Part shown: in pieces, positions 4,457-64,000 of the stretch
Layout: the number at the start of each line of letters is the position of its first letter
Numbering within the stretch: position 1 is the stretch's first letter
From: Macrostomum lignano
Taxonomy: Eukaryota
Reading direction: 5' to 3'
NCBI GenBank assembly: GCA_002269645.1
Contig: NIVC01000251.1
Coordinates: 620,001 to 684,000 of the forward strand
Length of the DNA: 64,000 bases
Made by a program: the position numbers and the translations under genes
The notes under the pieces: generated by a model
Databases searched by the model: none
Told to the model about the DNA's origin: nothing
The model's input: the letters and a program-made list of their open reading frames with translations, nothing else

Positions 4457-5517
<1,061 letters not shown>

Positions 5518-6200: not shown

Positions 6201-6441
6201 CAAAAAGAGACTTTTCTGTCGAAATTCTGTCCATCTGCGCCAAAAGAACGTTACAGAAACATACAGAAGGCTCAAAAGCAATGCTCAACAATCTTTCGAT
6301 TTGAGCCAATCAGAGAAATGAAGGAATAGAGAAAAAATGGGAATGAGTTAACGAGCGGCTTATAAGACAGTTTGGGAAGGCTTGATCCTTCGAGCCGAAT
6401 TCTCCAAAACCCTTGCTACCCCGACTGCATCCTTTGTCGCC

Positions 6442-23668: not shown

Positions 23669-24637
23669 TCACAATCCGGTGCTGCACACTGAGAATGTCC
23701 CAGACGATATCGACGAAGAACTGGAGGCTTGCTGATACTGCTGATGCTGTTGTTGAGCGCTAAAGTTCAACAGTGGCGGCGGAGGCGGCAACGGCTGGAC
23801 GAATAAACCGATTTTATCCAAAACTGGAGCTCCATCAGCGGCAGGATTAGCGTCAGTCTGTTCATCCTCCGACTCGTCAACAGCTGACAATGTCGGATCG
23901 AAATCGGCAAACTCGTCGGCAACAGTTTGACATCGACGCTGTCGTTGCTCGGTTGACGAATCGCTGGAGTCTTCTTGCCATTTCTCTAACGACCTCCGAC
24001 GCGCGTTCATGAAGTAATTGCAGACTGTGGAGAGTTCCAGACCCAGCTGCTCAGCTATGATCGATTGCATCTCTTTACTAGGCCTGCTAGTTTCGTTGAA
24101 TATCGCGTTGAGTGTCCGGCGCTGGATGTCCGTGAACACCAGCCGGGGCTTCTTGGCCGGGGTGCCGTTCGGTTCAGACGGCTTTCTAGTTGACGATTGT
24201 GGAGCTGGCGCTGAAGACTGCGACTGCGGCTGGAGCACGGATCTGGTAGGTGGCAGCTTTGGCTGCTGCTGCTGCTGGGCCTGAGACAGAGGGCCGTTGC
24301 AGTCACCAGAGTCAGCAGTGTCGAAGCTGCGTTTCAAAGCTGCAATAATCAGTTAGACAGTTGTACATATATTACACTATACAATTTTAACATCATATTA
24401 GATAAAACGCATGAGACAAGAGAAAGAATGAAGAAAGATTAGAGACAGAAAGCTAAAGAGATTAGAGGGTTCTAGAGAGAGATTAGAGATAGCGAGAGAA
24501 AGATAAGAGATAGCAAGACAGAGATTAGAGATAGCAAGACAGAGATTAGAGATAGCGAGAGAAAGATAAGAGATAGCAAGACAGAGATTAGAGATAGCAA
24601 GACAGAGATTAGAGATAGCAAGAGAGAAACTAAAGAT

Positions 24638-24687
<50 letters not shown>

Positions 24688-27600
24688 GAGACAGTGAGAG
24701 GGAGAGATTAGAGAAAGCGAGAGGGAGTTTAGAGACAGTAGGAAAGAAGTTTGAGATAGCGGGAAAGAGACTAGAAATAGCGATTCTTAAATTGGATTAG
24801 ATGGCGATTCTGAGAATGGATCAGGGGCGATTCTGAGAATGGATCAGGGGCGATTCTAAGAATTGGTCAGGGGCGATTCTGAGAATGGATCAGGGCGATT
24901 CTGAGAATGGATCAGGGGCGATTCTGAGAATGGATCAGGGCGATTTTTGGAATGGATCAGGGGCGATTCTAAGAATGGGTCAGGGGCGATTCTGAGAATG
25001 GATCAGGGGTGATTCTGAGAGTGAATCAGGGGTGATTCTAATAGTGGATCAGGGGGGGCAATTGTTGCCTCTCTCAGGGCAAGAGACCACTTCAAAACTT
25101 ACAGGCCGAGTGCAGCGAAGACATTCTATCCTCTACGGGAGTTTGCAGCCATTTCCACATGCGTCGGAAAGTTTCCCGACCAGATTTCAATTTGCTCCAC
25201 GGCTTCGGATTGCGCAACAGGTCCGACAGGGTGCCCTGGCTCCGGCAGAGCACCTGCTGAGCGAACACCGCCTGAGGAATGCCGCACTTTTTCAACTCGA
25301 AGATGACTCGCTGGGCCACCTCTTTCGTATTGATTTCGAATAACGGATCCGAAGCTGTCGGTAAATCTGCACTGCCGCTATCGGAATTGGCGTCCTTCTT
25401 GCTGTTGTAGTCTTGCAGTGTTGAGACCAGAATTTCGGCCGCATTGTCTTGGACTGTCACTGCAGCGGCTTTTGACGTTTGGCTTTTTGACTTTGCCGAT
25501 GTCGGTTTGGGCTTTGCTGGACTGAGCGACACTGCTGCTTGGACTGGGGGTGTCGACAAGCTGGCTACCGAGCCTGGCGTGCGAGATTTTTGGTAGGTTT
25601 ATGGTATACTATTGTATGTTTATGGTATACTATTGTATGTTTATGTATGTTGTATGTTTATGATTATATATTATCTGTATGTTTATGGAAGATTATCTGT
25701 ACATTTATGGTAGATTATCTGTGTGTTTATGGTAGATTATCTGTATGTTTATGGTAGATTATCTGTATGTTTATGGTAGATTATCTGTATGTTTATGGTA
25801 GATTATCTGTATGTTTATGGTAAATTCTCTGCATGTTTATGGTAGATTATCTGTATGTTTATGGTAGATTATCTGTATGTTTATGGTAGATTATCTGTAT
25901 GTTTATGGTAGATTATCTGTATGTTTATGGTAGATTATCTGTATGTTTATGGTAGATTATCTTTATGCTTATGTTGGATTATCTGTATGCTTATGGCAGA
26001 TTATCTGTATGTCTATAGTAGATTATCTGCATGTTTATGGTAGATTCTCTGTATGTTTATGGCAGATTATCTGTATGGTTATGGTAGATTCTTTGTATGC
26101 GATAGATTATTGATATGTTTATGGTATACTCAATGTTGGGCACCATTAATGAAAATCTTAACTTTCATCAATAGCAAAAGCATTAGCATTAAAACAAAAA
26201 AAATCTTAACTTATTAACTCTTAATTTTGTTAAGTTAACTGAGAGTTAACTGATTATCATTAATAAGCATTAATCCATTAAAATTAACACAAAATATATA
26301 AATCTTGCACTAATTTCCAAAGCTGACTTTATAATGCACTATCTTTGCTTTTCCACCTTTTTAGTAAAACACAAAGGTCATGTAAGCAATTTATGAGCTA
26401 AAAAGTAATAAATAATATTTTTTAAAAAACTTGAATGTATAATACTACTAAAAGTAAGCATACAATAAAATAATAACTCAGCTATTTGAAACTTGAAAGC
26501 TAATTAGTTAATCATAAAATATGGATAGGAAGGTTGTTTTAGTAGCATCAACAGGCACAGCAAAAAGTTACAAAAGATTAGGAAAGAAGTGAATCAAAGC
26601 AATCAATGCTCACACGCAATAATAAAGTCAAATTTTAATTTATTGTTAAAGTTCTTTAGTAAGAAGTTGTTACATTTGCATGATCATTATTGTAAACAAA
26701 GAGATTAATTAGGCATTCAGGTAAATTGAAATACATTTGTAATGTTGTAACTTCTCGTCAGACTTATATTTTTGTTCTTTCTTTGCATCTTTATTTGGTC
26801 ATTGACATTGCCATTAATGTTAATGATGATGTCATTAACTCATATAATTATTAACACAAATTAGTTATTCCCTTAGTTCAAAAAAATCTTAATGGCAGTC
26901 CATTAATGTAAATGAAAAATCTTAACACTTATTAATGCTTATTAACAGACTGGTGCCCAACACTGGGTATATTATTGAATATATAATAATGGTAGATTAA
27001 TTGTATGTTTTAAGTAACTCTTCTATATATATTTTAAGGATTCTTTTAGATTCATACGTTTACATTAGACTCTTAGATTTTTTGACAAAATTCTTATGGC
27101 TTAATGATGGAATTCTAGTTAATATAAGACAATTCTTGGGGGGAAGTTGAAGGAAACCCTAGAAAAAGCATATTTGAGTTATAGATTGTGTTATAAAATA
27201 TGTTTTAAAATTACTTTTAATTAAAAGTTTATATAACTTGTTAAATTCTATTTTATAATAGACAATTTTCTAAAATCTATATACTTTATAGATAGATAAA
27301 TAGATACAACCTACTGATAAACCATTTTTAGTACAATAGATTATGATTAATTGAAAAATTTGCTATTATTTAAATAATTAATGTTGAGTTAAGAAACTCT
27401 TTAATCTAAGAGAAGTTGCTTGTTTTCATAAAAGATTGTAATTTTTCAATATATAAGTATATAATAGGCCTATAACATATTAAACTATTAGCCAAATAAG
27501 TCTAGGCCTAATTTGATAAAAATAAAGACTAAATTAAAGAATTTATCAAGCATAAAAAAGATTGTTAGATAGATGGCTAATTAATAAAACAATTATTTGT

Positions 27601-28823
27601 TTTTATAGATTCAGTATGTTTCAACTTAAAAAAATTTCTTAGGGCCTAGTTTTAAATTTATAAATAAAATAAAAATGCTTACCAATAATAGGCATTTGAG
27701 GCTTTTGAGCCTGTTGACATGTAGTTGTTGTATCTTGGATTGTAGAATCTAGCTGAACTTCACTTGTTTGAAAAAACTCATTAGAATCTTCAAAATCTTG
27801 TTGGTTGTCTTGTGCTTGAAACATTGAAGCAACATTTGGCATAGAAATAAAGCCAGATACATTACCTTGCATTTGAGCAGGTTGAATTTGCATTGATTGA
27901 CTATGACTAATTTGCAAAGCTTCACTTAGCAAAGGTTGTTGGTGATGCTCATTAGAATCACAAGCATAAATGAGATCTTGTGTTTTATAGTCAAGTTGGT
28001 CTAGAGGATCAATTGGCAATGTTGATTCAATTCCTTGATGACTAAGGTTTAACTTCATACCATCATTAGATAAAAATGATGATTCTTTACTTTCAGCCAT
28101 GGCTAGGTTAGTTGGTTGATCAATTAGAAAATCAAGGCCAGGTGTAGAAGGCCGATTCAACTGAACTTCAAACTTATCAGCTGGCATTGATGATGACATT
28201 GATGATATAGCAAATGATGGCATAGTGCCACTTGTAACAGAACTAGTAGCATTTAGGACATGGTTTTGGCTATTGTCAATAAGCTGATAGGACACAGATC
28301 TTGCATCAGCTGGCACTGATGTCAATGGCAGACTTATAGAAGAGTCTGTAACACTAGCCGCTATTGCCATTGTTGGCATGTTGCCAGGTTGCAGTTGAAT
28401 TCTAGGATTAGAAATGCTGACAATAGGAACTTGATTGCAGTTTGGCAATAGAACTGGCTGTTGTTGAATTTCTGGTTGCTGTTGAGGCTGCAATGCTGGC
28501 GCTGCTATCAGAAGCTGTCCGCCGATAGGCAGATTTGGGTCCACATTAATCAGAGCAAGAGTGACGGTCTGCTGTCCTTGTCCAGTCTGAGAGTGAGATG
28601 CGTCTACTTTTGCGTTTGGTAAACTGATAACTTGCATGAGTTGATTCATCTGATCTGAATTAAGCCCACTAGACCGAATGCAAATATTCTGCGGCACTTG
28701 AAAACTCGATTGAGAAGTTGAGGCCATTATCAACGGCTGCGAACGTACTTGCTGGGAAATACCAGCACCATAGCTGTTGGAAGCAGCAATTGATCCGTAA
28801 GAAAACAGAGAATTTATTTCCAT
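23669..28823 (-). CDS. onecut: ONECUT-class homeobox transcription factor; exons 28823-27683, 25573-25103, 24339-23669 (about 760 aa)
   Basis: Single CUT domain (EINTKEVAQRV...CRSQGTLSDLLRNPKPWSKLKSGRETFRRMWKWLQ) plus an atypical homeodomain (KKPRLVFTDIQRRTL...NYFMNARRR). Both introns are phase 1 with GTAAG donors. The exon 2 acceptor could alternatively be 25564. Confidence 0.92.
24410..24770. repeat. 21-bp GA-rich repeat (GAGATTAGAGATAGCAAGACA) and (GA)n in ONECUT intron 2
   Basis: Read directly. Confidence 0.85.
24790..25050. repeat. 23-bp minisatellite (GGGGCGATTCTGAGAATGGATCA)n in ONECUT intron 2
   Basis: About 10 copies; the sense strand carries AGAATCGCCC. Confidence 0.92.
25590..26125. 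repeat. 22-bp minisatellite (TATCTGTATGTTTATGGTAGAT)n in ONECUT intron 1
   Basis: About 24 copies. Confidence 0.93.
26131..26965. mobile_element. Non-autonomous hAT-like DNA transposon (MITE), 835 bp
   Basis: TIRs CAATGTTGGGCACCA and TGGTGCCCAACACTG (14/15 match). 8-bp TSD GGTATACT / GGTATATT (7/8). AT-rich non-coding interior. Confidence 0.8.
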
Positions 28824-29219
28824 GTCATTACATTGGCTTTGTATACAAAATTAAACACAGAGGAGCGACTGCAAATTAAAAAAAACAAGAAAGCAATAAA
28901 GTCACGGTGCTGTGCTGTTCGCGTCTTAGAAAACTTCTTCAGAATTAATGGTTATTAATGAATAACAATTCTAATTTGTAAACACATTTCGCGGAAAAGA
29001 CACTTCATATGGTCTGAAAAAAGTAGTATTTTAAACAAAGTTAAACAGTACCCAAAAATTAAAATTTTATTGAAATAAAACTTACTATGTAGGGTAATTT
29101 TAGTTCTAAAGCTTACATATATCTTTATAGATTTTATGTTAAAACGGATCGGTTAATTTTGAATGCTTTTAATCGTCAATATACTAAATCTAATCAATGT
29201 TCTATTATCGATGCAAAAC

Positions 29220-29365
29220 CAGTGGCGGCGCAGGGGGGTGGCAGCTGCCCCCGGGTGACCACAAGTCACTGCCTCAAGGTGGGTGACCACCCCACCATCC
29301 CCACGGCCCTCGAAAAGACCCTAGGAAGGGCCAGGGCAGATGGTCACCCCTTGCTATGCAACTAG
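29220..29365. mobile_element. Possible degenerate short MITE (CAGTGGCGGCGCAGGGG ... CCCCTTGCTATGCAACTAG)
   Basis: GC-rich island in AT-rich DNA with imperfect inverted ends. No TSD found. Confidence 0.35.
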
Positions 29366-29952
29366 CACCAATGATTAAAAAAGCATTTTTATAAGATTTC
29401 TCGTTTTGTAAATTCATTTTGTAGGAAGTGTGTCATAATTTGTTCGTAATTTTTCACTGTCTTAGAAAATGCATGTGTTCTAATTCAAATGTTTTTATTT
29501 GTTTAATTACGATTGGGAAGGGGCGGGTTGACCACCTAGTGGATTAAACTGATGTCTTGATGTAAAGAAAAGTTTTTATGTTTAATTTAAACTCATTTTC
29601 AAGTGTTTGCAATTTCTTAGCGACTTGGTTAGTCTACGACTCCAGCGATTTTTTGTCTTATTTTAACCATCAATACATCTTTAGTAAATCTGCATGTTAT
29701 ACATGTGGTCAAATTCCACTGAATCTTCCAACTAAACCGATTATTTCTTAGGGGTAGTTACTTAAGCGCGTTTTTGACGGTTAATTCTCTGGTAAATAAA
29801 ATAGATAACACCACAAGATAACATTCGCTCAAACAAGATAACACATTCCCCATTCCGGTTATGCAAAATGTTATCTTGTATGAATCCTGTTTGGGTGACG
29901 AAATCTTACGTTTTCTTGTTTCATGAACAAGATTCAAATAGGATTCACTGAT

Positions 29953-30187
29953 CAGGTAACAGTCGGGTAATTCATGCAAAAATCCTACAGGGAAACATCG
30001 TGTTATCCTGTTTGTTATCTTGTTTGTTATCCTGTCTGACAAAAAAAGATTCGCTGACCAGGTAACAGTCGGGTAATTCATGCAAAAATCCTACAGGGAA
30101 ACATCGTGTTATCCTGTTTGTTATCTTGTTTGTTATCCTGTCTGACAAAAAAAGATTCGCTGACCAGGTAACAGTCGGGTAATCCAT
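29953..30187. repeat. 106-bp tandem duplication (about 2.2 copies) rich in GTTATC
   Basis: CAGGTAACAGTCGGGTAAT recurs at 29953, 30059 and 30165. Confidence 0.9.
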
Positions 30188-31639
30188 GCGAAAAAAAGCC
30201 GGAAGGCATTGACATCAAATTTCGCAAGTAAAGAAGCGTATAAAAAGTTGGTGCTTCAAGATTTTATGAGTATAGCATCTATTTAACAGCAGGGTGTCAT
30301 TTGTAAGCACCTTATACAAACTAAACGGTAGCTCAACAGGAACGAAAACTTCTGGAGAACAGCGTGGCATACGTCTGAGTTTCGGGAGTCCAGTTATAAG
30401 TAGACCTACTTATACTGTGGATACCAATTGATACTACTGAATTGGTGATCTGCTGCGAGCTGGTGTACTCGCTGGTGAGATCGGACCTGCTGTACTCGGA
30501 CGCGACTCTGACGGCAGTCGACGCGTGAGCCAGACGTTTGAAAGATCGGGTCGCGTACGCGGACGGCGATTAATGAGACCACTGACGGGGGCTTGCATTT
30601 ATATGCTGGCGCAATGGAACGATTCTGCATTATTAAAGTTAAATTAAATGGCAATGGAAGGTAGTTTCTCCGAAATATACACAGTTATAAAGAAACAGTA
30701 ATGTACATACACACTCGATCGCCCAGCTCTAACAGACAGCGACGGTTCGCCGACAATCATTGCCAGATTGTACGACTGTTCACTAGTAATGTCAGCTGCG
30801 TCGATAGAATTGTCATTCGTAGCATAGTCGTCGTCCGGAATCAACTGGCTTTCGTTGATCGGCTGCTCGTAGAGCGGAGACAAGGTGAATGCTATCATCT
30901 GATGCGCCGGCTCGTGCGGCGATGGCTTCGTCGTGCAGTTGCGTCCAAGAATGCCGACTGCGCTGGAAACTCTTACATGATTGTCTTCGCAATCCCGTGT
31001 GCTAACGGTAATATCCAACCGACTTGGCGTTGCAGATGTCGCTATAGTGCGATGGACGATCGTCTAACGGCGTCATCAACTGTGTCGTTCGAAGCAGTGA
31101 CACCCTCTGGAAACAAGTGGCTGACAAGATTACCGACACTCGTAGTCTGTAACGACTACTCTCTTGACTTGATCTGCTCACGGCTGGTGCAACTGCAAAC
31201 GCCTTAGACAAACCAATGGAGCATGCACCGAAAAAAATCGGATTAGCGTCTATCTTAATAGGAAAGCTGCTTTGCATACTGGGCCAGTTAGAGCTATTTG
31301 GAACTATGCCACAGTCTCCGTCTAGACACCCAGCTGTGCCAAACAATATGGTTGGCTGACTCATGCTTCTAAGCGTCAAATATGACGATAGAATCATTCA
31401 GCCCGTTGACACACTAAGCAGCTGTGATAGACTACATGCCAGTGGAAGTCAAACCTCTCGCACACAAACAGGGCGCAACAATTTATCAACTGTCACCTGT
31501 ACGGAGGATGGGCTCAGCCTCACATTACGGATGCTACAGTGCCTCCGAAAAGCAGATCAATTCACCTTGCAATTTCGAGGCTTTATTACCCCTCGGATTA
31601 AAGATTGACCCGCGTAGTCAAATAAAATTGACTACTCTT

Positions 31640-32120
31640 AGCAGCTGCCTTGAGCCACAACAGACGCGAGGATTGATTATCCATCGCAGGTCAGCATAGC
31701 AGCTGCCTTGAGCCACAACAGAAGCGAGGATTGATTATCCATCGCAGGTCAGCATAGCAGCTGCCTTGAGCTACAACAGAAGCGAGGATTGATTATCCAT
31801 CGCAGGTCAGCATAGCAGCTGCCTTGAGCTACAACAGAAGCGAGAATTGATTATCCATCGCAGGTCAGCATAGCAGCTGCCTTGAGCCACAACAGAAGCG
31901 AGGATTGATTATCCATCGCAGGTCAGCATAGCAGCTGCCTTGAGCTACAACAGAAGCGAGAATTGATTATCCATCGCAGGTCAGCATAGCAGCTGCCTTG
32001 AGCCACAACAGAAGCGAGGATTGATTATCCATCGCAGGTCAGCATAGCAGCTGCCTTGAGCTACAACAGAAGCGAGGATTGATTACCCATCGCAGGTCAG
32101 CATAGCAGCTGCCTTAAGCC
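31640..32120. repeat. 58-bp tandem repeat (about 8 copies)
   Basis: Unit GCAGCTGCCTTGAGCYACAACAGAAGCGAGRATTGATTATCCATCGCAGGTCAGCATA. Confidence 0.95.
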
Positions 32121-33240
32121 ACAATAGACGCGAAGAGCAGTCTTATCCGTAACTTCATCGAGATTCGGGTCAATGGGAGCTGATCCCTGTGGATTTTCCG
32201 GATCACTTGGTCTAGATCACTGAGGAATTCCGACTGAACTCCCAAAATCTCATTCAGAACATTTTCATTTGGAAAACCTGAAATTTAGGTCTACAGCAGC
32301 TGTTCCAGGTTAAAAATTTTGGAAAATCCAGCCGGAACAGCTTTCCTTTTTCCCGAACTTTTGAAGGATCACATTTTCCGGAAAAGGGGGCTATTCCGGG
32401 CCAAAAATGCTGATCCGGGCCTTCACTTGGAAATCAAATAATAATTCGGGCCCGGATCACAAAATTCTGGGTGAAAAGTACAACGGGTTCTTACAGACCG
32501 GATAACACAAAGGCATCTTGATTGAAATATTTTTCCATTATCTGGTTTGCAAACCAGATTTGCATCCTGTTATCCGGCAAATTTCAGATTCACACAGGTT
32601 TCTTACAAACCAGATAACACACAGTTATCTTGATTAAAATCTTTTACTGTTATCTGTTTTTCAAACAAGATCCGACCCATGTTATCCTGTGAAATTCCGA
32701 TTCAAACAAGATCAACCAAGATAACAGAGAATTATCTGGTGGCGAATCTTGTCATGTAATCTGATTTCTAAGCAAGATTCGGGCCATATTATCTGGTGAA
32801 ATTCAGATAACTCACCACATAACAGTCAAACCCGATAACACTAAAATTACCTGGTGACGAATCTGGTGGTTTAACCAGTTTCGAACCTCAAACAAGGAAA
32901 TCGGCGTACACGAACCACATCCAATGTTTTATGTAACTTCTACAATCCTAAAATGAGCCACTACCAATGCACCATTAAATAATTTAACGATAAACACTGC
33001 ATAATTAATTACTCAATCAATGACGTGCTAATAATTACAAACAAATGCACCCACAACACGGATTAGCGTAGACAGAGTCCAGTGTATTTTTGTCTGTCGC
33101 AATATGGATGCATTTTAGATGCAAATGAATTAAAAAGGCGAATTTATAATCACTGTCGCTGCAGATTTACAAACATACATTTCTTATTAAAATTTAAATG
33201 GAATTTATTGATAGCCAATTAATTGAATTGTCCTACAAAT

Positions 33241-36200
33241 CTACCAAAGCAGCCGTTTTTCCATGATCTCCACAGTGATCCGTTTGCGGAAGTACGGCAT
33301 GTTGTCCTGAAATAAATCGGGCCAATTTTCCACTTTTTTTGATCGTGCGTAATATTCGAACATCTCTACTTTAAGTAAGATGATAAGTACCTGGCTTGAA
33401 AAAGGGTTAGTGTTCGGTTAAAGATAGATAAATTAAGGTGTCCGTGAGATTAGAAATGGTAATAATGAGATGAAGAATAGATTTAGTGATGGTAGAATTA
33501 GAGATAAGATTAGAATAGAGAATGGGTGGGATGAGAGAATAGATGAGATTAGAGATAGATGAGAATAGAGAATATAGATATACGAGAATCGAGAATGGAT
33601 GAGATTTGAGATATGAGAATAGAGAATATAGATATACGAGAATCGAGAATGGATGAGATTTGAGATATGAGAATAGAGAATAGAGATATACGAGAATCGA
33701 GAATGGATGAGATTTGAGATATGAGAATAGAGAATATAGATATACGAGAATCTAGAATGGATGAGATTTGAGATATGAGAATAGAGATATACGAGAATCG
33801 AGAATGGATGAGATTTGAGATATGAGAATAGAGAATATAGATATACGAGAATCGAGAATGGGTGAGATTTGAGATTTGAGAATAGAGAATGGGTGGGGTG
33901 AGAGAATAGATGAGATTAGAGCTTGGTGAAAATAGAGAATGTATGAGATTAGAGATGCACGAGATGGGAGAATGGGTGAGATTAGACAGTTGAGAAAAGA
34001 CAATGGGTGAGATGAGAGTTCTAGAGGACAAGAAACAGTTTTTACGAACCAATTAGACTCTAAAAAAACACAACCAACCTGACTAAACGTGAAGTCCTTC
34101 TGCTTGCAATAGTAATCGGCAAATTTGCAGGTGAACACACCACAGTCTGATCCGTTCTCTTGTTGCGGAGCGCCAGTCTCGCGGATCAGCTGATAATCAG
34201 ACAGGTCGGGCAATGCAGTTCCGGATTTCTTGTCTCGATGCTCGTCTGCCAAGTACTGTCGCATCAGGGGCAAGCAGCTGGCGCCGCCGCCCATTGACAG
34301 GCTGTCAAGATAGATGATGTTGCGGCAGCGCAGGTCAACGATGCACAGAGTCCAGTGGTTGTTGTGCAGGTGGACGGGACAGAGAAGGATGTCGCAGCTG
34401 AATATGTCCACCTGATGGAGGTAATTAACATTTTCTTACCTATCCGATATTATACTGATAGTTCATTGAGAATCAAATAAGCTCAGAAACCGGGAATCTC
34501 CTACTCAGACAACAGGAATCCCTGAAAAGACACCAGGAATCCCTGAAAAGACACCAGGAATCCCTAATTCATATATGAAGAATTCCAAAATCAAATACAG
34601 GGAATCCTCAACCCAGATTCAGGGAATCCCCAACCCACGTACAGGGAATCCCCAAACCAGATACAGGGAATCCCCAACCCAGATACAGGGAATCCTCAAC
34701 CCAGACACAGAGAATCCCCAACCCAGACATAGGGAATCCCAACCCAGACAGGGAATCCCCAAATTAAATTCAGGGACTCCCCAACCCAGACACCGGGAAT
34801 CCCTAACTCAGACACAGGGAATCCCCAACCCAGACACAGGGAATCCCCAACTCAGACACTGGGAATCCCCAACTCAGACACTGGGAATCCCCAACTCAGA
34901 CACTGGGAATCACCAACTCGGACACAGGGAATCCCCAACTCAGACACTGGGAATCCCCAACTCAGACACTGGGAATCCCCAACTCAGACACAGGGAATCC
35001 CCAACTCAGACACTGGGAATCCCCAACTCAGACACTGGGAATCCCCAACCCAGACACAAGGAATCCCCAAACCCAGACAAAAGGAATCCCCAACTCAGAC
35101 ACAGGAAATCCCCAACTCAGACACAGGAATCCCCAACCCAGACACAAGGAATCCCCAACTCAGACACAGGGAATCCCCAACTCAGACACAGAAAATCCCC
35201 AACCCAGACACAGGGAATCACCCAACCCAGACACAAGGAATCCCTAACCCAGACACAGGGAATCCCCCAACCCAGACACAGGGAATCCCCCAACCCAGAC
35301 ACAGGGAATCCCCAACCCAGACACAAGGAATCCCCAACCCAGACACAAGGAATCCACAAACTAGATTCAGGGAATCCCCAACCCAGACACAGGGAATCTC
35401 CAACTCAGACACAGGAAATCCCCAACCCAGACACAGGGAATCCCCAACTTAGACACAAGGAATCCCCAACTCAGACACAGGGAATCCCCAACTCAGACAC
35501 AGGGAATCCCCAACCCAGACACAGGGAATCCCCAACCCAGACAAAGGGAATCCCCAACCCAGACACAGGGAATCCCCAACCCAGACACAGGGAATCCCCA
35601 ACCCAGATACAAGGAATCCCCAACCCAGACACAAGGAATCCACAAACTAGATTCAGGGAATCCCCAACCCAGACACAGGGAATCCCCAAATCAGACACAG
35701 GGAATCCCCAACTAAGACACCGAGAATCCATAACCGGTAAGTAACTAATCATAGCAATTAATCCATACCTTCCGAGTCCACCGTCTAACAGACGCGTAGC
35801 CGCTAGACGACAGTTTAGTATAAAAGAACGTAGAGAACGCGTGCACTTTAGGCAGACCCAGCTGTTCATCAGCCGACCTGGCCGCAATCAGCTGCATATA
35901 AAAATTCACAATATTATCATTCAGCCAGTTTAATCCGGCCAACGATCTCAGCTCTTCCCTAGTGACTCGCAGGCTAAATCCTTCGTCTAGAACTTCCGAG
36001 CTAGGCAGCTGGCGAGACCAGGCTCGTTCAACTAGCTGCAGCTGGGCCTCGGTTAGGTCGGGAAATTCTTCCTCTTCTTCATCAGCTGCCGGCGGCGGAG
36101 TCGGCGGCGGCTCCTCGTACTGATAGGGCAAGACTGGCAGCTCGCGTTCGGCTAGTTTGAGATTGCGAGTCACCCTGGCAACCAGGTCGCGCTCATCCGC

Positions 36201-54300: not shown

Positions 54301-57300
54301 TGCTGGGCCACCAGCCTCCCACATCCTCAGTTGCTGGGCCACCAGCCTCCCAGATCCTCAGTTGCTGGGCCACCAGCCTCCCAGATCCTCAGTTGCTGGG
54401 CCACCAGCCTCCCAGATCCTCAGTTGCTGGGCCAGCCTCCCAGATCCTCAGTTGCTGGGCCACCAGCCTCCCAGATCCTCAGTTGCTGGGCCACCAGCCT
54501 CCCAGATCCTCAGTTGCTGGGCCAGCCTCCCAGATCCTCAGTTGCTGGGCCACCAGCCTCCCAGATCCTCAGTTGCTGGGCCACCAGCCTCCCAGATCCC
54601 CAGTTGCTGGGCCAGCCTCCCAGATCCCAGTTGCTGGGCCAGCCTCCCAGATCCTCAGTTGCTGGGCCACCAGCCTCCCAGATCCTCAGTTGCTGGGCCA
54701 CCAGCCTCCCAGATCCTCAGTTGCTGGGCCACCAGCCTCCCAGATCCTCAGTTGCTGGGCCACCAGCCTCCCAGATCCTCAGTTGCTGGGCCAGCCTCCC
54801 AGATCCTCAGTTGCTGGGCCACCAGCCTCCCAGATCCTCAGTTGCTGGGCCACCAGCCTCCCAGATCCCCAGTTGCTGGGCCAGCCTCCCAGATCCCCAG
54901 TTGCTGGGCCAGCCTCCCAGATCCTCAGTTGCTGGGCCACCAGCCTCCCAGATCCTCAGTTGCTGGGCCACCAGCCTCCCAGATCCTCAGTTGCTGGGCC
55001 ACCAGCCTCCCAGATCCTCAGTTGCTGGGCCAGCCTCCCAGATCCTCAGTTGCTGGGCCACCAGCCTCCCAGATCCTCAGTTGCTGGGCCACCAGCCTCC
55101 CAGATCCCCAGTTGCTGGGCCAGCCTCCCAGATCCCCAGTTGCTGGGCCAGCCTCCCAGATCCTCAGTTGCTGGGCCACCAGCCTCCCAGATCCTCAGTT
55201 GCTGGGCCACCAGCCTCCCAGATCCTCAGTTGCTGGGCCACCAGCCTCCCAGATCCTCAGTTGCTGGGCCACCAGCCTCCCAGATCCTCAGTTGCTGGGC
55301 CAGCCTCCCAGATCCTCAGTTGCTGGGCCACCAGCCTCCCAGATCCTCAGTTGCTGGGCCACCAGCCTCCCAGATCCCCAGTTGCTGGGCCAGCCTCCCA
55401 GATCCCCAGTTGCTGGGCCAGCCTCCCAGATCCTCAGTTGCTGGGCCACCAGCCTCCCAGATCCTCAGTTGCTGGGCCACCAGCCTCCCAGATCCTCAGT
55501 TGCTGGGCCACCAGCCTCCCAGATCCTCAGTTGCTGGGCCACCAGCCTCCCAGATCCTCAGTTGCTGGGCCACCAGCCTCCCAGATCCTCAGTTGCTGGG
55601 CCAGCCTCCCAGATCCTCAGTTGCTGGGCCACCAGCCTCCCAGATCCTCAGTTGCTGGGCCACCAGCCTCCCAGATCCCAGTTGCTGGGCCAGCCTCCCA
55701 GATCCCCAGTTGCTGGGCCAGCCTCCCAGATCCTCAGTTGCTGGGCCACCAGCCTCCCAGATCCTCAGTTGCTGGGCCACCAGCCTCCCAGATCCTCAGT
55801 TGCTGGGCCACCAGCCTCCCAGATCCTCAGTTGCTGGGCCAGCCTCCCAGATCCTCAGTTGCTGGGCCACCAGCCTCCCAGATCCTCAGTTGCTGGGCCA
55901 CCAGCCTCCCAGATCCTCAGTTGCTGGGCCAGCCTCCCAGATCCTCAGTTGCTGGGCCACCAGCCTCCCAGATCCTCAGTTGCTGGGCCACCAGCCTCCC
56001 AGATCCCCAGTTGCTGGGCCAGCCTCCCAGATCCCCAGTTGCTGGGCCAGCCTCCCAGATCCTCAGTTGCTGGGCCACCAGCCTCCCAGATCCTCAGTTG
56101 CTGGGCCACCAGCCTCCCAGATCCTCAGTTGCTGGGCCACCAGCCTCCCAGATCCTCAGTTGCTGGGCCAGCCTCCCAGATCCTCAGTTGCTGGGCCACC
56201 AGCCTCCCAGATCCTCAGTTGCTGGGCCACCAGCCTCCCAGATCCCCAGTTGCTGGGCCAGCCTCCCAGATCCCCAGTTGCTGGGCCAGCCTCCCAGATC
56301 CTCAGTTGCTGGGCCACCAGCCTCCCAGATCCTCAGTTGCTGGGCCACCAGCCTCCCAGATCCTCAGTTGCTGGGCCACCAGCCTCCCAGATCCCCAGTT
56401 GCTGGGCCAGCCTCCCAGATCCTCAGTTGCTGGGCCAGCCTCCCAGATCCTCAGTTGCTGGGCCACCAGCCTCCCAGATCCTCAGTTGCTGGGCCATCCT
56501 CCAAGATCCCCAGTTGCTGGGCCAGCCTCCCAGATCCTCAGTTGCTGGGCCACCAGCCTACCAGATCCCCAGTTGCTGCTCCATCCTCCCAGATCCCCAG
56601 TTGCTGGGCCACCAGTCTCCCAGATCCTCAGTTGCTGGGCCAGCCTCCAAGATCCTCAGTTGCTGGGCCACCAGTCTCCCAGATCCTCAGTTGCTGGGCC
56701 ACCAGCCTACCAGATCCCCAGTTGCTGCTCCATCCTCCCAGATCCCCAGTTGCTGGGCCACCAGTCTCCCAGATCCTCAGTTGCTGGGCCAGCCTCCAAG
56801 ATCCTCAGTTGCTGGGCCACCAGTCTCCCAGATCCTCAATTGCTGGGTCAGCCTCCCAGATCCTCAGTTGCTGGGCCATCCTCCAAGATCCTCAGTTGCT
56901 GGGCCACCAGCCTCCCAGATCCTCAGTTGCTGGGCCAGCCTCCCAGATCCTCAGTTGCTGGGCCACCAGCCTACCAGATCCCCAGTTGCTGCTCCATCCT
57001 CCCAGATCTCCAGTTGCTGGGCCACCAGTCTCCCAGATCCTCAGTTGCTGGGCCAGCCTCCCAGATCCTCAGTTGCTGGGCCACCAGCCTCCCAGATCCC
57101 CAGTTGCTGGGCCACTGCCTCCCAGATCCTCAGTTGCTGCTCCATCCTTCCAGATCCTCAGTTGCTGGGCCACCAGCCTACCAGATCCTCAGTTGCTGGG
57201 CCACCAGCCTCCCAAATCCCCAGTTGCTGGGCCACTGCCTCCCAGATCCTCAGTTGCTGGGCCAGCCTCCCAAATCCTCAGTTGCTGGGCCACCAGCCTC

Positions 57301-60300
57301 CCAGATCCTCAGTTGCTGGGCCACCAGCCTACCAGATCCTCAGTTGCTGGGCCAGCCTCCCAAATCCCCAGTTGCTGGGCCACTGCCTCCCAGATCCTCA
57401 GTTGCTGGGCCAGCCTCCCAGATCCTCAGTTGCTGGGCCACCAGCCTCCCAGATCCTCAGTTGCAGGGCCACCAACCTCCCAGATCCTCAGTTGCAGGGC
57501 CACCAACCTCCCAGATCCTCAATTGCTGGGCCAGCCTCCCAGATCCTCAGTTGCTGGGTCAGTCTCCCAGATCCTCAGTTGCTGCTCCAGCAGCCTTCCA
57601 GATGCTGTTTCTGGGCCAGCCTTCCAGATCCTCAGTTGCTGGGCCACCAGCCTCCCAGATCCTCAGTTGCTGGGCCATCAGCCTTCCAGATGCTGTTGCT
57701 GGGTAAGTCGAATCAAAAGATTCTAAAACGTCAACTCGCAGGTCATCAAACGCTCGGTGGCCGTCTCGGACATCCTATCGCTGCACCTGTCTCCCTATCA
57801 AGACGGCTTCCTTGTGGTGAAATGTCGCGATGGAGACGATTCTCTGCTCGAAGTGGCGTGCAAAACCGAGTTGCTCCTGCTGCTACTCGAACGGAACCCG
57901 GATTTGAAAATCGACTTCAGCACCAGCGTGGAGTTCTCGCTGCCGAAACGGGGCCTGCTGGGCAGGACCACCCGGCGGGTGAACTTCGTGTGCGACAGGG
58001 CTCGAGTCCGCCAGCCTGACTCGGTGCACGATCGGCGAGTTGCCACGGACGACTCGGCTCGGGTCGTGCTCAAGTCTTCGGGAATCGGTGAGGTTTTTTT
58101 CCTGTACTGTTTGAATTATTTCCAAGAATCGCCTCTAAGCAGTTAGAGAATCAATCGTTCTTGAGCAGTTCCAAGAATCGCCTTTGAGCAGTTCTGCAAG
58201 CAATCGCCCCTGAGCAGTTCTGCAAAGAATCGCCCCTGAGCAGTTCTGTAAAGAATCGCCCCTGAGCAGTTCTGCAAAGAATCGCCCCTGAGCAGTTCGA
58301 AGAATCGCCCCTGAGCAGTTCTACAAAGAATCGCCCCTGAGCAGTTCTGCAAAGAATTGCCCCTGAGCAGTTCTGCAAAGAATCGCCCCTGAACAGTTCT
58401 GCAAAGAATCGCCCCTGAGCAGTTCTGCAAAGAATCGCCCCTGAGCAGTTCTGTAAAGAATCGCCCCAGAGCAGTTCTGTAAAGAATCGCCCCAGAGCAG
58501 TTCTGCAAAGAATCGCCCCTGAGCAGTTCTGCAAAAAATCGCCCCTGAGCAGTTCTGTAAAGAATCGCCCCTGAGCAGTTCGATCTGTAAAGAATCGCCC
58601 CAGAGCAGTTCTGTAAAGAATCGCCCCTGAGCAGTTCGAAGAATCGCCCCTGAGCAGTTCTACAAAGAATCGCCCCTGAGCAGTTCGAAGAATCGCCCCT
58701 GAGCAGTTCTGCAAAGAATCGCCCCTGAGCAGTTCTGTAAAGAATCGCCCCTGAGCAGTTCGATCTGTAAAGAATCGCCCCAGAGCAGTTCTGTAAAGAA
58801 TCGCCCCAGAGCAGTTCTGCAAAGAATCGCCCCTGAGCAGTTCTACAAAGAATCGCCCCTGAGCAGTTCTGTAAAGAATCGCCCCTGAGCAGTTCGATCT
58901 GTAAAGAATCGCCCCAGAGCAGTTCTGTAAAGAATCGCCCCTGAGCAGTTCGAAGAATCGCCCCTGAGCAGTTCTACAAAGAATCGCCCCTGAGCAGTTC
59001 GAAGAATCGCCCCTGAGCAGTTCTGCAAAGAATCGCCCCTGAGCAGTTCTGTAAAGAATCGCCCCTGAGCAGTTCGAAGAATCGCCCCTGAGCAGTTCTA
59101 CAAAGAATCGCCCCTGAGCAGTTCTGCAAAGAATCGCCCCTGAACAGTTCTCTAAAGAATCGCCCCTGAGCAGTTCTGCAAAGAATTGCCCCTGAGCAGT
59201 TCCAAGAATCGCACCTAAGCAGTTCTGCAAAGAATCGCCCATGATCAGTTCTAAGAATCGCCCATGAGCAGTTCCAAGAATCGCCCATGAGCAGTTCCAA
59301 GAATCGCCCATGAGCAGTTCCAAGAATCGCCCATGAGCAGTTCCAAGAATCGCCCATGAGCAGTTCCAAGAATCGCCCATGAGCAGTTCCAAGAATCGCC
59401 CATGAGCAGTTCCAAGAATCGCCCATGAGCAGTTCCAAGAATCGCCCATGAGCAGTTCCAAGAATCACTCCTGAGCAGTTCTAAGAATCGCCCCTGAGCA
59501 GTTCCAAGAATCGCCCATGAGCAGTTCCAAGAATCACTCCTGAGCAGTTCTAAGAATCGCCCCTGAGCAGTTCCAAGAATCGCCCCTGAGCAGTTCCAAG
59601 AATCGCCCCTGAGCAGTTCCAAGAATCGCCCCTGAGCAGTTCCAAGAATCGCCCCTGAGCAGTTCCAAGAATCGCCCCTGTATAAGGATTCAATTTTATA
59701 TGCATGTAGGCCTTAGGAACTATTTAAGACTAAGTAAGACTGAGGTAAGACTGAGGTAAGGTAAGAGTGAGCGTGCCATGACTATGTAATTTGATTATGA
59801 TCACTTAAGTAATTAGCATTAGATATGCAGATCAGATAGAGTAGTAATGGCTAAATCAGCCCCAGTGCTAGGCGATGGAATTGCTCAGACTTACCCAAGT
59901 AATGAGCAGTAGCGGAGGCACGCACAGTAGAACTTGCAGATATTACAACTTGGAGAGTAGAGTTTTTTAGAGAATAGAAGGCAGTGATAATTTAGTCAAA
60001 ATCATACTTATATTTATAGTTATTATTGCCCGTGCAGTTCCCAGTCGTCTAGTCCAGCACCCCAGTCATCAGATGTCGCCTTCTCCAACTCGTTACCTCG
60101 TTCCAGACTCGTTGACATCAGTTCCCAAGTTCCCACCGATTCTGAAAGGCTTAACCTGCGTAAAAGATTAGTTGGCCCCCACCCCACAAATACCCTAATG
60201 GACCCTTTAAAGTGGAAACAGACTTTTAGGGCGGCCTGCACTCGCCCTTTGCAATGCCGTCATCAAGCACTTGTGGCTTTTTGTAAGAGTGTAGCAGTCC

Positions 60301-61427
60301 GCATCTACAACACTCCACCACGCTCTGATAGCATTGCAGATCCCTAATTATTGCCTAATTTAGTCCCTAATACTACTTCCTAAAATAGTCCCTAAATAGT
60401 TCCTAAGGCTTACATGCATATAAAATTGAATCCTTATACCCTGAGCAGTTCTGTAAAGAATCGCCCCTGAGCAGTTCTGCAAAGAATCGCCCCTGAGCAG
60501 TTCCAAGAATCGCCCATGATCAGTTCTGCAAAGAATCGCCCCTGAGCAGTTCCAAGAATCGCCCATGATCAGTCCTGCAAAGAATCGCCCCTGAGCAGTC
60601 CGAAGAATCACCCCTGAGCAGTCCGAAGAATCACCCCTGAGCAGTCCGAATAATCGCCCCTGAGCAGTCCGAATAATCGCCCCTGAGCAGTCCGAAGAAT
60701 CGCCCCTGAGCAGTTCGAAGAATTGCCCCTGAGCAGTCCGAAGAATCGCCCTGAGCAGTCCGAAGAATCACCCTGAGCAGTCCGAATAATCGCCCCTGAG
60801 CAGTCCGAAGAATCGCCCATGAGTAGTTTTATTACCCAATCATAATTACTCTACTAACAGTAGAAAGTCGAATTTTTTACAAAACTCCTGCAGGTGGCAG
60901 CGGCGGCCTCACTGTCACGGTCGGCTCCGGCCTGTCAAACACAACGGACGCGTCGGGTCCCCGATCCAAGCAGGCTGGTGGCGGCGGGCAGCGAGCCGTC
61001 CGTCAGCAGCCGCAGGTCATCGATTCGCGGCTCCCGCCGGCCGGCCAGCTGCCCACAGCCAGGCGTCGGTCGCGAGGCAACAACAGCGGCACCGACGCCA
61101 GCGAGCGGCAGCAGCAGATCGCTCAACGCCGGCAAAGTTCTGCAACCACCGCAGCCAGCGGCAAGCTGCCGAAACCGACGCCCGCACAGCGACAGCAGCG
61201 ACAACAGCCGAATCCGAATCCGAATCCGCCGCCAATTCTCACTGACAGCGTCATCTATCAGGCTGTGCAAAAGCCGGGCCCGCCGAGGCCGCCAGTGCCG
61301 CGTCAGAAGCCGCCGCCTCCGCCGCCGACCGCAGTGCCGCGCTGTGTCGCTCTGTGGGCATACGACGCCCAGGACACGAACGAGCTCAGCTTTAACGTTG
61401 ATGATGTTATTGAAATTGTTAAAAAAG
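45342..61427 (+). CDS. myo1e: Long-tailed class I myosin (MYO1E/F-like), partial; exons 45342-45473, 45619-45708, 45787-45881, 46103-46280, 47316-47478, 47558-47661, 49922-50257, 51079-51446, 52021-52440, 53230-53374, 53713-54111, 57742-58087, 60894-61427; start and last exon(s) unresolved or outside the window
   Basis: [22 protein letters not shown]-loop GESGAGKT, switch I NNNSSRFGK, switch [18 protein letters not shown], one IQ (RVIQKAFR), TH1 (KYDRRF), Pro/Gln-rich TH2 and the start of an SH3 ([15 protein letters not shown]). All joins are phase-consistent. Confidence 0.94.
46385..46960. repeat. CT-rich simple repeat (CTCTCC)n in myosin intron
   Basis: Read directly. Confidence 0.9.
46983..47270 (+). 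mobile_element. tRNA-derived SINE, copy 1
   Basis: A-box-like TGGTCAGAGCATCGG and B-box GGTTCGATTC, then the core GAGTCCTTGAGAAAGACGCTT...CACCCAGCTGTAAAATGGGTGCC. A second copy lies at 52520. Confidence 0.85.
47780..48480. repeat. TCTCAGATCTC-based minisatellite in myosin intron
   Basis: Read directly. Confidence 0.88.
49075..49440. repeat. GGCGCCAAAATAAGGAGCG-type composite tandem repeat
   Basis: Read directly; GGCGCC core. Confidence 0.85.
50258..51045. repeat. About 25-bp minisatellite (GAAGAATCGCCCCTGAACCGATCCT)n filling myosin intron 50258-51078
   Basis: About 30 copies starting directly at the donor. Confidence 0.95.
51630..51945. repeat. 24-bp minisatellite (AAATCGGCGCCAAAATTGAGTTTY)n
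   Basis: About 13 copies, with a 120-bp block duplicated. Confidence 0.9.
52520..52740 (+). mobile_element. tRNA-derived SINE, copy 2 (internal deletion in the core)
   Basis: Shares head and 3' half (AGCTGTAAAATGGGTGCCAGCATTAGCTGGGGTAATTGAG...GCAATAGCTGCGGCTGAG) with the copy at 46983. Confidence 0.85.
53460..53690. repeat. About 15-bp degenerate repeat (GAAATCCCGAAATTC)n
   Basis: Read directly. Confidence 0.75.
54140..57700. repeat. 28/31-bp minisatellite (CAGTTGCTGGGCC[ACC]AGCCTCCCAGATCCT)n, about 3.55 kb, in myosin intron 12
   Basis: About 115 units. There are no stop codons in any + frame, hence three overlapping ORFs over 1100 aa. Confidence 0.97.
58130..60825. repeat. 23-26-bp minisatellite (AAGAATCGCCCCTGAGCAGTTC[TGCA])n in myosin intron 13, split by a TIR element
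   Basis: Array segments at 58130-59680 and 60439-60825. Confidence 0.95.
59681..60438. mobile_element. Non-autonomous TIR DNA transposon, 758 bp, superfamily unassigned
   Basis: 46-bp TIRs beginning TATAAGGATTCAATTTTATATGCATGTA (45/46 identical). TSD is CCCTG (5 bp), or CCT (3 bp) if the ends are GTATA...TATAC. Confidence 0.88.
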
Positions 61428-61454
61428 GTTGGAATCTAAAAATTTATTACGACC

Positions 61455-64000
61455 GAATCGCCCCTGAACAGCTGAGAGAATCGCCCATGAACAGCTGAGA
61501 GAATCGCCCATGAACAGCTGAGAGAATCGCCCCTCATGAACAGCTAGGAGAATCGCCCCTGAACAGCTGAGAGAATCGCCCTGAACAGCTGGGAGAATCG
61601 CCCCTGAACAGCTGAGAGAATCGCCCTGAACAGCTGGGAGAATCGCCCCTGAACAGCTGAGAGAATCGCCCTGAACAGCTGAGAGAATCGCCCTGAACAG
61701 CTGAGAGAATCGCCCCTAAACAGCTGAGAAAATCACCCATGAACAGCTGAGAGAATCGCCCTGAACAGCTATGAGAATCGCCCCTGAACAGCTGAGAGAA
61801 TCGCCCTGAACAGCTGAGAGAATCGCCCCTGAACAGCTGAGAGAATCACCCCTAAATAGCTGAGAGAATCACCCCTGAACAGCTGAGAGAATCGCCCATG
61901 AACAGCTGAGAGAATCGCCCATGAACAGCTGAGAGAATCACCCCTAAATAGCTGAGAGAATCACCCCTGAACAGCTGAGAGAATCACCCCTGAACAGCTG
62001 AGAGAATCACCCCTGAACAGCTGAGAGAATCACCCCTGAACAGCTGAGAGAATCACCCCTGAACAGCTGAGAGAATCGCCCTTCAGGAACAGCTGAGAGA
62101 ATCACCCCTGAACAGCTGAGAGAATCGCCCTTCAGGAACAGCTGAGAGAATCGCCCTTCAGGAACAGCTGAGAGAATCGCCCTGAACAGCTGAGAGAATC
62201 GCCCTGAACAGCTGAGAGAATCGCCCCTAAACAGCTGAGAGAATCACCCATGAACAGCTGAGAGAATCGCCCTGAACAGCTATGAGAATCGCCCCTGAAC
62301 AGCTGAGAGAATCGCCCTGAACAGCTGAGAGAATCGCCCCTGAACAGCTGAGAGAATCACCCCTAAATAGCTGAGAGAATCACCCCTGAACAGCTGAGAG
62401 AATCGCCCATGAACAGCTGAGAGAATCGCCCATGAACAGCTGAGAGAATCACCCCTAAATAGCTGAGAGAATCACCCCTGAACAGCTGAGAGAATCACCC
62501 CTGAACAGCTGAGAGAATCACCCCTGAACAGCTGAGAGAATCACCCCTGAACAGCTGAGAGAATCACCCCTGAACAGCTGAGAGAATCGCCCTTCAGGAA
62601 CAGCTGAGAGAATCACCCCTGAACAGCTGAGAGAATCGCCCTTCAGGAACAGCTGAGAGAATCGCCCCTGAACAGCTGAGAGAATCGCCCTGAACAGCTG
62701 AGAGAATCGCCCTGAACAGCTGAGAGAATCGCCCCTAAACAGCTGAGAGAATCACCCATGAACAGCTGAGAGAATCGCCCTGAACAGCTATGAGAATCGC
62801 CCCTGAACAGCTGAGAGAATCGCCCTGAACAGCTGAGAGAATCGCCCATGAACAGCTGAGAGAATCACCCCTAAATAGCTGAGAGAATCACCCCTGAACA
62901 GCTGAGAGAATCGCCCATGAACAGCTGAGAGAATCACCCCTGAACAGCTGAGAGAATCACCCCTGAACAGCTGAGAGAATCGCCCTTCAGGAACAGCTGA
63001 GAGAATCACCCCTGAACAGCTGAGAGAATCGCCCTTCAGGAACAGCTGAGAGAATCGCCCCTGAACAGCTGAGAGAATCACCCCTGAACAGCTGAGAGAA
63101 TCGCCCTTCAGGAACAGCTGAGAGAATCACCCCTGAACAGCTGAGAGAATCGCCCTTCAGGAACAGCTGAGAGAATCACCCCTGAAAAGCTGAGAGAATC
63201 GCCCTTCAGGAACAGCTGAGAGAATCGCCCCTGAACAGCTGAGAGAATCACCCCTAAACAGCTGAGAGAATCACCCCTGAAAAGCTGAGAGAATCGCCCT
63301 TCAGGAACAGCTGAGAGAATCACCCCTGAACAGCTGAGAGAATCGCCCCTGAACAGCTGAGAGAATCGCCCCTGAACAGCTGAGAGAATCACCCCTGAAC
63401 AGCTGAGAGAATCACCCCTAAATAGCTGAGAGAATCGCCCTTCAGGAACAGCTGAGAGAATCGCCCTTCAGGAACAGCTGAGAGAATCACCCCTAAATAG
63501 CTGAGAGAATCACCCCTGAACAGCTGAGAGAATCACCCCTGAACAGCTGAGAGAATCACCCCTAAATAGCTGAGAGAATCACCCCTAAATAGCTGAGAGA
63601 ATCGCCCTTCAGGAACAGCTGAGAGAATCGCCCCTGAACAGCTGAGAGAATCACCCCTGAACAGCTGAGAGAATCACCCCTAAATAGCTGAGAGAATCAC
63701 CCCTAAATAGCTGAGAGAATCGCCCTTCAGGAACAGCTGAGAGAATCGCCCTTCAGGAACAGCTGAGAGAATCACCCCTAAATAGCTTAGAGAATCGCCC
63801 TTCAGGAACAGCTGAGAGAATCGCCCTTCAGGAACAGCTGAGAGAATCACCCCTAAATAGCTTAGAGAATCGCCCTTCAGGAACAGCTGAGAGAATCACC
63901 CCTAAATAGCTGAGAGAATCGCCCTTCAGGAACAGCTGAGAGAATCGCCCCTGAACAGCTGAGAGAATCACCCCTGAACAGCTGAGAGAATCACCCCTAA
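61455..64000. repeat. 23-26-bp minisatellite (GAGAATCRCCCCTGAACAGCTGA)n in myosin intron 14, running off the window
   Basis: More than 100 copies with about 510-bp higher-order periodicity. Confidence 0.96.

Follow-up and report, generated by a model that had tools for sequence, protein, structure and literature searches.

What determines the orientation of a repeated motif that, intron after intron, reads in the direction of transcription? The question is raised by a single stretch of the Macrostomum lignano genome (64,000 nucleotides of contig NIVC01000251.1; hereafter the window), a 64-kb piece of DNA that holds four genes and to which all of the counts given here refer. Three of these genes, encoding a ONECUT protein, a SENP/Ulp1-type protease and a class-I myosin, carry in six of their introns tandem arrays built on a common core, and an initial annotation, made from the DNA alone, had proposed that this core marks a distinct intron-repeat system. 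We think it probable, if not strongly so, that the arrays are one dispersed minisatellite family of M. lignano whose orientation follows a general rule, under which the sense strand of an array is poor in G, and that no dedicated signal is needed.

Six arrays and their common unit

Exact copies of the core, AGAATCGCCC, occur 173 times in the window, against 0.09 expected. Every one of the 34 on the minus strand lies within 24825-41163, where ONECUT and the SENP gene are read from that strand, and every one of the 139 on the plus strand lies within 50287-63950, in the plus-strand myosin gene. A shared core that is always on the sense strand, as first reported, is what these counts describe. Allowing up to one mismatch raises the number to 324, of which 322 are on the sense strand of the host-gene region (213 of 214 plus-strand matches in myosin, 109 of 110 minus-strand matches in ONECUT and SENP). 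Of the two exceptions, one stands alone at 52321, on the strand opposite to that of its gene, and the other is a minus-strand match just within the sequence that flanks a SENP array. Along the window the core changes strand once, between 41.2 and 50.3 kb.

Tandem Repeats Finder (TRF) reports seven core blocks, at 24780-25055 (period 23), 37365-39623 (24), 40068-41206 (27/28), 50260-51036 (25), 58162-59680 (26/23), 60440-60827 (23) and 61455-64000 (23, running past the window edge). These amount to six arrays in six introns of three genes, the number given by the initial annotation, as the blocks at 58162-59680 and 60440-60827 are one array split by an inserted element. With periods of 23-28, copy numbers from 12 to more than 108 and matches of 74-97% by TRF, all of them are minisatellites in the usual sense of the word, and their unit sequences are as originally described.

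On the minus strand, the ONECUT array (24780-25055) lies in the intron between the CUT and homeodomain exons and has about 12 copies of a 23-nt sense unit, AGAATCGCCCCTGATCCATTCTC; its donor, CCT^GTAAGT (a caret marks the splice junction), is about 47 nt upstream on that strand. One SENP intron is filled by the array at 37365-39623 (minus strand), about 93 copies of a 24-nt sense unit, AGAATCGCCTCTCAATCTCACCTG, with higher-order periods of 48, 72 and 117, which begins about 24 nt past an inferred donor, CTG^GTATAG, and stops about 20 nt short of the acceptor CCCCTCAG^. Most units of this array contain AGAATCGCCTC, and the exact 10-mer is present in only 8 of the ~93. The next SENP intron upstream holds about 41 copies of the sense unit AGAATCGCCCCTAATCCCAATCTTGATA (27/28 nt; 40068-41206, minus strand), with the donor AAT^GTGAGT about 109 nt upstream.

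In the plus-strand myosin gene, the motor-domain intron 50258-51078 is filled by about 30 copies of a 25-nt unit, AGAATCGCCCCTGAACCGATCCTGA (50260-51036). The donor GT is at 50258-50259 and the first unit overlaps the donor from +3 on, giving the junction GAG^GTAAGAATCGGCCC that had already been noted. A second array lies in a tail intron whose donor is GGGAATCG^GTGAGG (GT at 58088-58089). A first degenerate unit starts at 58124, and units of AGAATCGCCCCTGAGCAGTTCTGCAA (26 nt) and ...GCAGTTCCA (23 nt), or, written from the core on the sense strand, AGAATCGCCCCTGAGCAGTTCCA and ...TTCTGCAA, run on to 59680. There the array is interrupted by a 760-bp insertion (59680-60439, no strand assigned) that resembles a miniature inverted-repeat transposable element (MITE) and stands outside the repeat family: its inverted terminal repeats of 47 nt are 98% complementary, there is a duplication of CCT/CCCTG where it inserted, and past the element the array unit is back in register. 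The array then continues on the plus strand from 60440 to 60827, which leaves 66 nt to the acceptor, CTCCTGCAG^G, at 60893. The third myosin array (61454-64000, plus strand) lies in the intron that splits the SH3 domain; it begins 26 nt past the donor AAG^GTTGGA and repeats a 23-nt unit, AGAATCGCCCCTGAACAGCTGAG, more than 108 times, running past the edge of the window.

An alignment of the units from the core has 12 invariant columns out of its first 14, followed by 9-14 nt that differ in both sequence and length. The block common to the units is 14 nt, AGAATCGCCCCTGA, followed by a variable tail; the 10 nt first taken as the core fall short of it, and they misdescribe the SENP 37365 array with its prevailing AGAATCGCCTC. 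We refer to the six core-bearing arrays as the AGAATCGCC family. In cyclic pairwise comparisons, in which shuffled units reach at most 22, the scores of six of the seven TRF blocks run from 26 to 55, and those of the SENP 37365 array, at 19-22, are borderline. The myosin arrays most resemble each other (39-55), ONECUT and SENP arrays score 31, and ONECUT and myosin arrays score 28-35. That the units are alike well beyond the 10-nt core argues for a common origin of the six arrays, which, to judge by their units, form one dispersed minisatellite family: across the three genes, the six are separate loci with a common core and a differing remainder. The common origin had been anticipated by the initial annotation, and the nearly invariant columns and the scores above the shuffled range bear it out; the step from there to a distinct intron-repeat system is one that we do not follow.

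Two further arrays that had been mentioned as possible relatives drop out of the family. The array at 16046 (16045 in the initial annotation) has alignment scores within the shuffled range and just one 8-mer, CGCCCCTA, in common with the 40068 array; that at 34507 (given as 34490), thought loosely similar, also scores within the shuffled range and shares no 7- or 8-mer with the core arrays. Beyond the window, stretches with two cores one period apart were sought in metagenome contigs (106 stretches) and in prokaryotic genome contigs (86 stretches), and nearly all were single chance matches. The three loci with many cores were unrelated: the 27-bp unit of L001 and L103 (ACAACAGAATCACCTTCTGAAGAAGTA) is probably coding, and that of L133, from a Sporolactobacillus genome, is 21 bp long. 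The antisense strand of the myosin tail array contains a 436-aa open reading frame (ORF; 58151-59461, minus strand), and a protein search with it for mis-called sister arrays gave no match at E <= 0.001.

Within arrays, an unanchored alignment of the units makes the core less variable than the tail in four of the seven blocks, equally variable in two and more variable in one, and the core CpG of the 61455 array has changed G>A in 43% of units. As a sign of constraint, within-array core variability is weak at best.

Another block, GGCGCCAAAA, is common to a second group of arrays: two in myosin introns (49078-49431 and 51623-51939) have it on the plus strand, and two downstream of ONECUT (17584-18675 and 19365-20400) have it on the minus strand.

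Strand skew among unrelated arrays

The orientation of the core has to be read against that of all the other arrays. On the sense strand, GC skew is -0.02 to -0.06 in non-array intron sequence and -0.24 to -0.59 in the arrays, in all four genes. C exceeds G on the sense strand in 16 of the 20 intronic arrays and in 13 of the 14 whose absolute GC skew is above 0.2, in two plus- and two minus-strand genes. If the core arrays are set aside, C outnumbers G on the sense strand of nine strongly skewed arrays, and one goes the other way. In other words, strand-biased intronic tandem repeats are a feature of this 64-kb window as a whole. Because unrelated arrays keep the same strand skew, the orientation of the core is no evidence of a special core-based system, and the core-specific orientation from which the initial annotation had argued for one is shared, nine to one, by skewed arrays that lack the core.

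Predicted folding distinguishes the same two strands. In 18 of 20 arrays the antisense RNA is predicted to be the more stable of the two (Wilcoxon P = 0.0015), the means being -18.0 kcal/mol per 100 nt for sense and -26.8 for antisense RNA. Runs of at least three G are essentially absent from the sense strands of arrays; all six core arrays have 0-1.8 of them per kb of sense strand versus 21-62 per kb of antisense strand.

Strandedness of intronic tandem repeats has been documented in other animals (PMC3152781), and orientation bias of repeats in transcribed DNA is commonly attributed to interference with RNA-processing signals (PMC10030826). GC skew promotes R-loops as well as G-quadruplexes, and human genes have an excess of G+T (PMC10030826), a skew opposite in sign to that of the arrays. 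Being opposite to the human excess and limited to the arrays, the skew seen here is therefore not a general transcription-coupled mutation bias. A sense-strand rule for intron-filling arrays is apparently undescribed for M. lignano.

How much does the uniform orientation of the core say by itself? Counted by gene, its chance probability is 0.25, and a value of ~0.03 applies only if the six arrays are independent. The data also fit one founder per gene cluster, which would leave a single informative orientation event (P = 0.5). Among all arrays, blocks are shared in the same sense by 11 pairs, against 4.35 expected (k = 7, P = 0.003). This is not a general property of arrays, as it is gone in opposite-strand pairs without core arrays, and it reflects local relatedness on the same strand. 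Between genes on opposite strands, 7- and 8-mers are shared in the same sense only where the pair includes a core array, and in non-core pairs same-sense and opposite-sense sharing stand at 1 to 1 (k = 7) and 0 to 0 (k = 8). Since the same-sense excess stems from same-strand pairs, it fits local duplication.

In four arrays (6861-8406, 8929-9429, 10771-11523 and 37365-39623) the antisense strand of each unit has one near-consensus 5' splice site, in the forms CAGGTGAGG, CTGGTGAGG or CGGGTGAGA, CAGGTAAGA and, for the SENP 37365 array, CAGGTGAGA. The sense intron RNA of these four carries CUCACCUG or CUUACCUG, which resembles the 5' end of U1 small nuclear RNA. Unit shuffles predict 0.97 such antisense-donor arrays (P = 0.014, post hoc) and 0.28 arrays with sense-strand donors, of which none was seen. 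Selection against sense-strand donors does not suffice as the cause of the orientation, because the G-poor composition alone predicts almost none. If the transcription-oriented reading is true, a sense-strand excess of CUCACCUG or CUUACCUG in other arrays would be an instance of the same RNA-level logic.

An older intron, host genes and repeat load

The donor-to-array distances of the six core arrays are 0, ~24, 26, 36, 47 and 109 nt, and where both ends are visible the distance from array to acceptor is 20-66 nt. An unrelated 31-mer array at 54138-57703 starts 26 nt past its donor and stops about 40 nt short of its acceptor. Arrays start close to donors because they fill short introns up to the splice signals, and unrelated arrays do likewise; the donor-proximal starts pointed out by the initial annotation are real as distances (0-109 nt) but are not a special feature of the core arrays.

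The motor-domain intron 50258-51078 corresponds in position and phase to an intron of trout myo1e (FDFIVE^SVNKAMV versus FDFLVE^SINKAIV), which is ~112 nt long in trout versus 821 nt here, almost wholly array. An intron at the trout position and phase was therefore not created by a mobile repeat-bearing element, and the match excludes an intron-creating (introner) origin for this, the one intron tested. By this comparison the intron that holds the 50260 array is ancient and the array colonised it. The ONECUT intron that separates the CUT domain from the homeodomain is probably conserved in vertebrates as well. Inverted repeats or target-site duplications of introner type were not seen in the junctions read, where the arrays leave little flank.

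A self-BLAST with the arrays masked found no shared non-repeat flanks beside the core arrays. Its sole return was a pair of sequences (46980-47238 and 52517-52737) resembling short interspersed nuclear elements (SINEs), 84-89% identical, in the same orientation and both in myosin introns; apart from this pair, the window has no dispersed repeat of a non-tandem kind, and ARAGORN and Rfam give no match to it. A unit of the 'mirage' type, which would span the exon-intron boundary, was also considered and rejected, as the arrays start at +3 to about +109 and exon sequence is unrepeated.

All three myosin core introns have GAATC(G) at or beside the donor: GGGAATCG^GTGAGG (58080-58090), GAG^GTAAGAATCGG (50256-50270) and AAG^GTTGGAATCT (61428-61440). 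Array units may have advanced as far as the splice site, or microhomology may have seeded the arrays; the observation is post hoc.

The host genes and their strands are those of the initial annotation. ONECUT (23669-28823, minus strand) has exons at about 27639-28823, 25103-25559 and 23669-24342 by its ORFs, with Pfam matches to CUT (7.6e-33) and Homeodomain (3.4e-10) in minus-strand exons. The SENP/Ulp1-type protease gene (33752-43864, minus strand) matches Pfam Peptidase_C48 (6.2e-27 and 2e-9) and has had its exon junctions read; its N-terminal exons are putative. The class-I myosin gene (45369-64000, plus strand), delimited by Pfam and a tblastn exon map, is myosin-IE-like, with head, TH1 and SH3 domains, and its top named matches are myosin-Ie/IEb (55-61% identity). 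The three genes are direct neighbours (23669-64000), and human chromosome 15q carries ONECUT1, MYO1E and SENP8, a hint of conserved linkage.

The fourth gene (6382-13750, plus strand) resembles those of G-protein-coupled receptors (GPCRs); it has three exons, and its introns contain four unrelated minisatellites. C-rich arrays at 13839-17119, 3' of its stop codon, keep the plus-strand skew. An apparently intact long interspersed nuclear element (LINE) occupies 639-5379 on the minus strand, with ORF1 and endonuclease, reverse-transcriptase and RNase H regions. Several M. lignano UniRef proteins match its reverse-transcriptase ORF (639-3080, minus strand) at 96-100% identity, and a 23-bp tandem array stands at the window edge (1-108), on the 3' side of the element. 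Rfam and tRNA (ARAGORN) scans of the whole window gave no match.

Tandem arrays with units of 12-58 bp make up 44% of the window by TRF; for the M. lignano genome, simple and tandem repeats have been put at 15% (PMC5730564). Mean intron length is 1,114 nt in M. lignano versus 558 and 692 nt in two congeners, and a complete description of the repeat content of the species is yet to come (PMC10468722). Several arrays contain very long ORFs, the longest, of 1,344 aa, across the 31-bp array (53692-57726) and another, of 389 aa, in an array at 34575-35744, and such ORFs could be mis-called as protein genes. M. lignano is a model for regeneration and stem cells whose repeats hamper assembly and annotation, and the window illustrates what genic repeats can be like: they fill introns, keep short conserved blocks and obey a strand rule foreign to the surrounding intron sequence.

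Competing explanations and related systems

The 23-28-bp unit consists of a conserved half of 14 nt, AGAATCGCCCCTGA, and a fast-changing half of 9-14 nt, and copies of it lie in introns of three adjacent genes that, to judge by the one tested, were there before them; they have expanded to nearly the whole intron, short of some 0-110 nt on the donor side and 20-70 nt on the acceptor side. The G-poor, C-rich strand of the family is the sense strand, so that the intron RNA lacks G-runs and, by prediction, folds weakly. Because arrays of the same gene are the most alike, spread would have been mainly local, within a gene or a gene cluster. Arrays with a G-rich sense strand may have been selected out, or may have been unable to expand in transcribed DNA; their costs would include G-runs in every unit, stronger RNA structure, proneness to R-loops or G-quadruplexes, and more GT. 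On this view the core would be the slow-changing part of an inherited unit.

Several points weigh against this proposal. The rule rests on four genes in 64 kb, the direction of transcription is confounded with a plausible direction of replication, and the step of selection is one that we infer. One array also breaks the rule: that at 34507-35729 is G-rich on the SENP sense strand (GGGTTGGGGATTCCC...) and its sense RNA is predicted to be the most stable of all (-40.7 kcal/mol per 100 nt), yet it fills its intron. Finally, uniform neutral divergence would not keep a 14-nt block while the tail turns over, so that constraint or re-seeding is possible.

A uniform orientation could also come from chance followed by local copying, if a minus-strand founder spread through ONECUT and SENP and an inverted founder spread within myosin. 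The myosin arrays are indeed mutually closest, there is a single strand switch (41.2-50.3 kb), and non-core arrays lack same-sense k-mer sharing across opposite-strand genes. However, copying from chance founders leaves unexplained that 13 of the 14 skewed arrays, in all four genes, are C-rich on the sense strand, and ONECUT-SENP likeness (31) is no greater than that of ONECUT to myosin (28-35); we regard this history as unlikely, though as one to be taken seriously. Distinctly less plausible to us is that the family began as internal repeats of a MITE-, Helitron- or SINE-like transposon, expanded after insertion until the ends of the carrier were erased or dwarfed. In other invertebrates transposons carry tandem arrays, some mobile step is needed to disperse arrays over both strands, and the window has a MITE-like element in one array and a SINE-like pair in two myosin introns. 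But no non-repeat flanks are shared beside the core arrays in the self-BLAST, and several arrays are flanked by no more than 20-40 nt of non-repeat intron on either side.

Two remaining explanations seem to us improbable. The orientation could stem from replication asymmetry, with an origin in the AT-rich region of the divergent SENP and myosin promoters (~44-45 kb), forks that move in the direction of transcription in each of the four genes and terminate between the convergent GPCR-like and ONECUT genes, and slippage that favours one leading/lagging arrangement of the C-rich strand. The sign changes of the skew match the divergent promoter and the convergent 3' ends, arrays in non-coding regions (13.8-17.1 kb and 22.8-23.4 kb) keep the skew of the neighbouring gene, and replication-linked strand asymmetries are well established (PMC10030826); yet non-array sequence is unskewed, and the arrays at 17.6-21.8 kb give no clean switch. 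Alternatively, the core may itself be a signal, either in a spread mediated by intron RNA, which would impose the sense orientation, or as a multimerised AGAAUCGCCCCUGA bound by a factor that helps swollen introns to be spliced or tolerated. In its favour, the 14-nt block hardly varies from array to array even as the tail turns over, it is less variable than the tail in four of seven array blocks, GAATC is at or beside the donor in three of three myosin core introns, and six of six arrays are in sense orientation. However, the 50260 intron is ancient, the CpG decays freely (in one array, G>A in 43% of units), in three of seven blocks the tail is conserved as well as the core or better, and there is no Rfam match; the orientation is covered by a rule common to unrelated arrays, and most array introns lack the core and yet lie between intact exons. 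We are just as sceptical of the larger claim that, genome-wide, the AGAATCGCCCCTGA family is almost exclusively intronic and sense beyond what C/G skew explains, through propagation by intron RNA (for instance if excised, repeat-rich introns were reverse-transcribed) or through a factor, recruited by the multimerised RNA motif, that keeps swollen introns spliceable.

If, as we favor, a dispersed family follows a general G-poor-sense rule, and if that rule holds genome-wide, M. lignano would offer a natural system for learning which orientations are tolerated in transcription units with respect to R-loops, G-runs and cryptic splice signals. The rule would also help to explain introns about twice as long as those of its congeners.

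The arrays resemble several known systems in part. Introner elements, which create new introns, are related sequences that fill introns of unrelated genes in sense orientation; here, the one intron tested is ancient, neither terminal repeats nor target duplications showed up in the junctions read, and the likeness is that of a 23-28-nt tandem unit, not of a whole element. Transposon-borne tandem arrays form dispersed short-unit families of this kind, but no carrier sequence was detected beside the arrays described here. Jeffreys et al. reportedly described in 1985 families of human hypervariable minisatellites that share a core, and PMC3880010 mentions these families as history. Like them, the present arrays are separate, with differing units and a common core of 10-15 nt. 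The human core, however, is G-rich, chi-like and tied to recombination hotspots and subtelomeres, whereas the core here is AGAATCGCCCCTGA, unrelated to the human one in sequence, and its arrays fill introns; the human arrays are not known to have a fixed orientation to transcription. Mayer et al. 2010 (PMC3152781) dealt mainly with micro-repeats of 1-6 bp in arthropods, in contrast to the units of 15-58 bp found here, in arrays of 0.3-3.5 kb that make up 44% of the window and have a bias of C over G. Amphioxus 'mirage' minisatellites (PMC3087553 and the Adh3 work cited there) likewise lie at intron ends in the orientation of the gene and are tolerated by splicing. Their units contain duplicated exon-intron boundaries, whereas in M. 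lignano the exon sequence is unrepeated and one family of units recurs in different genes.

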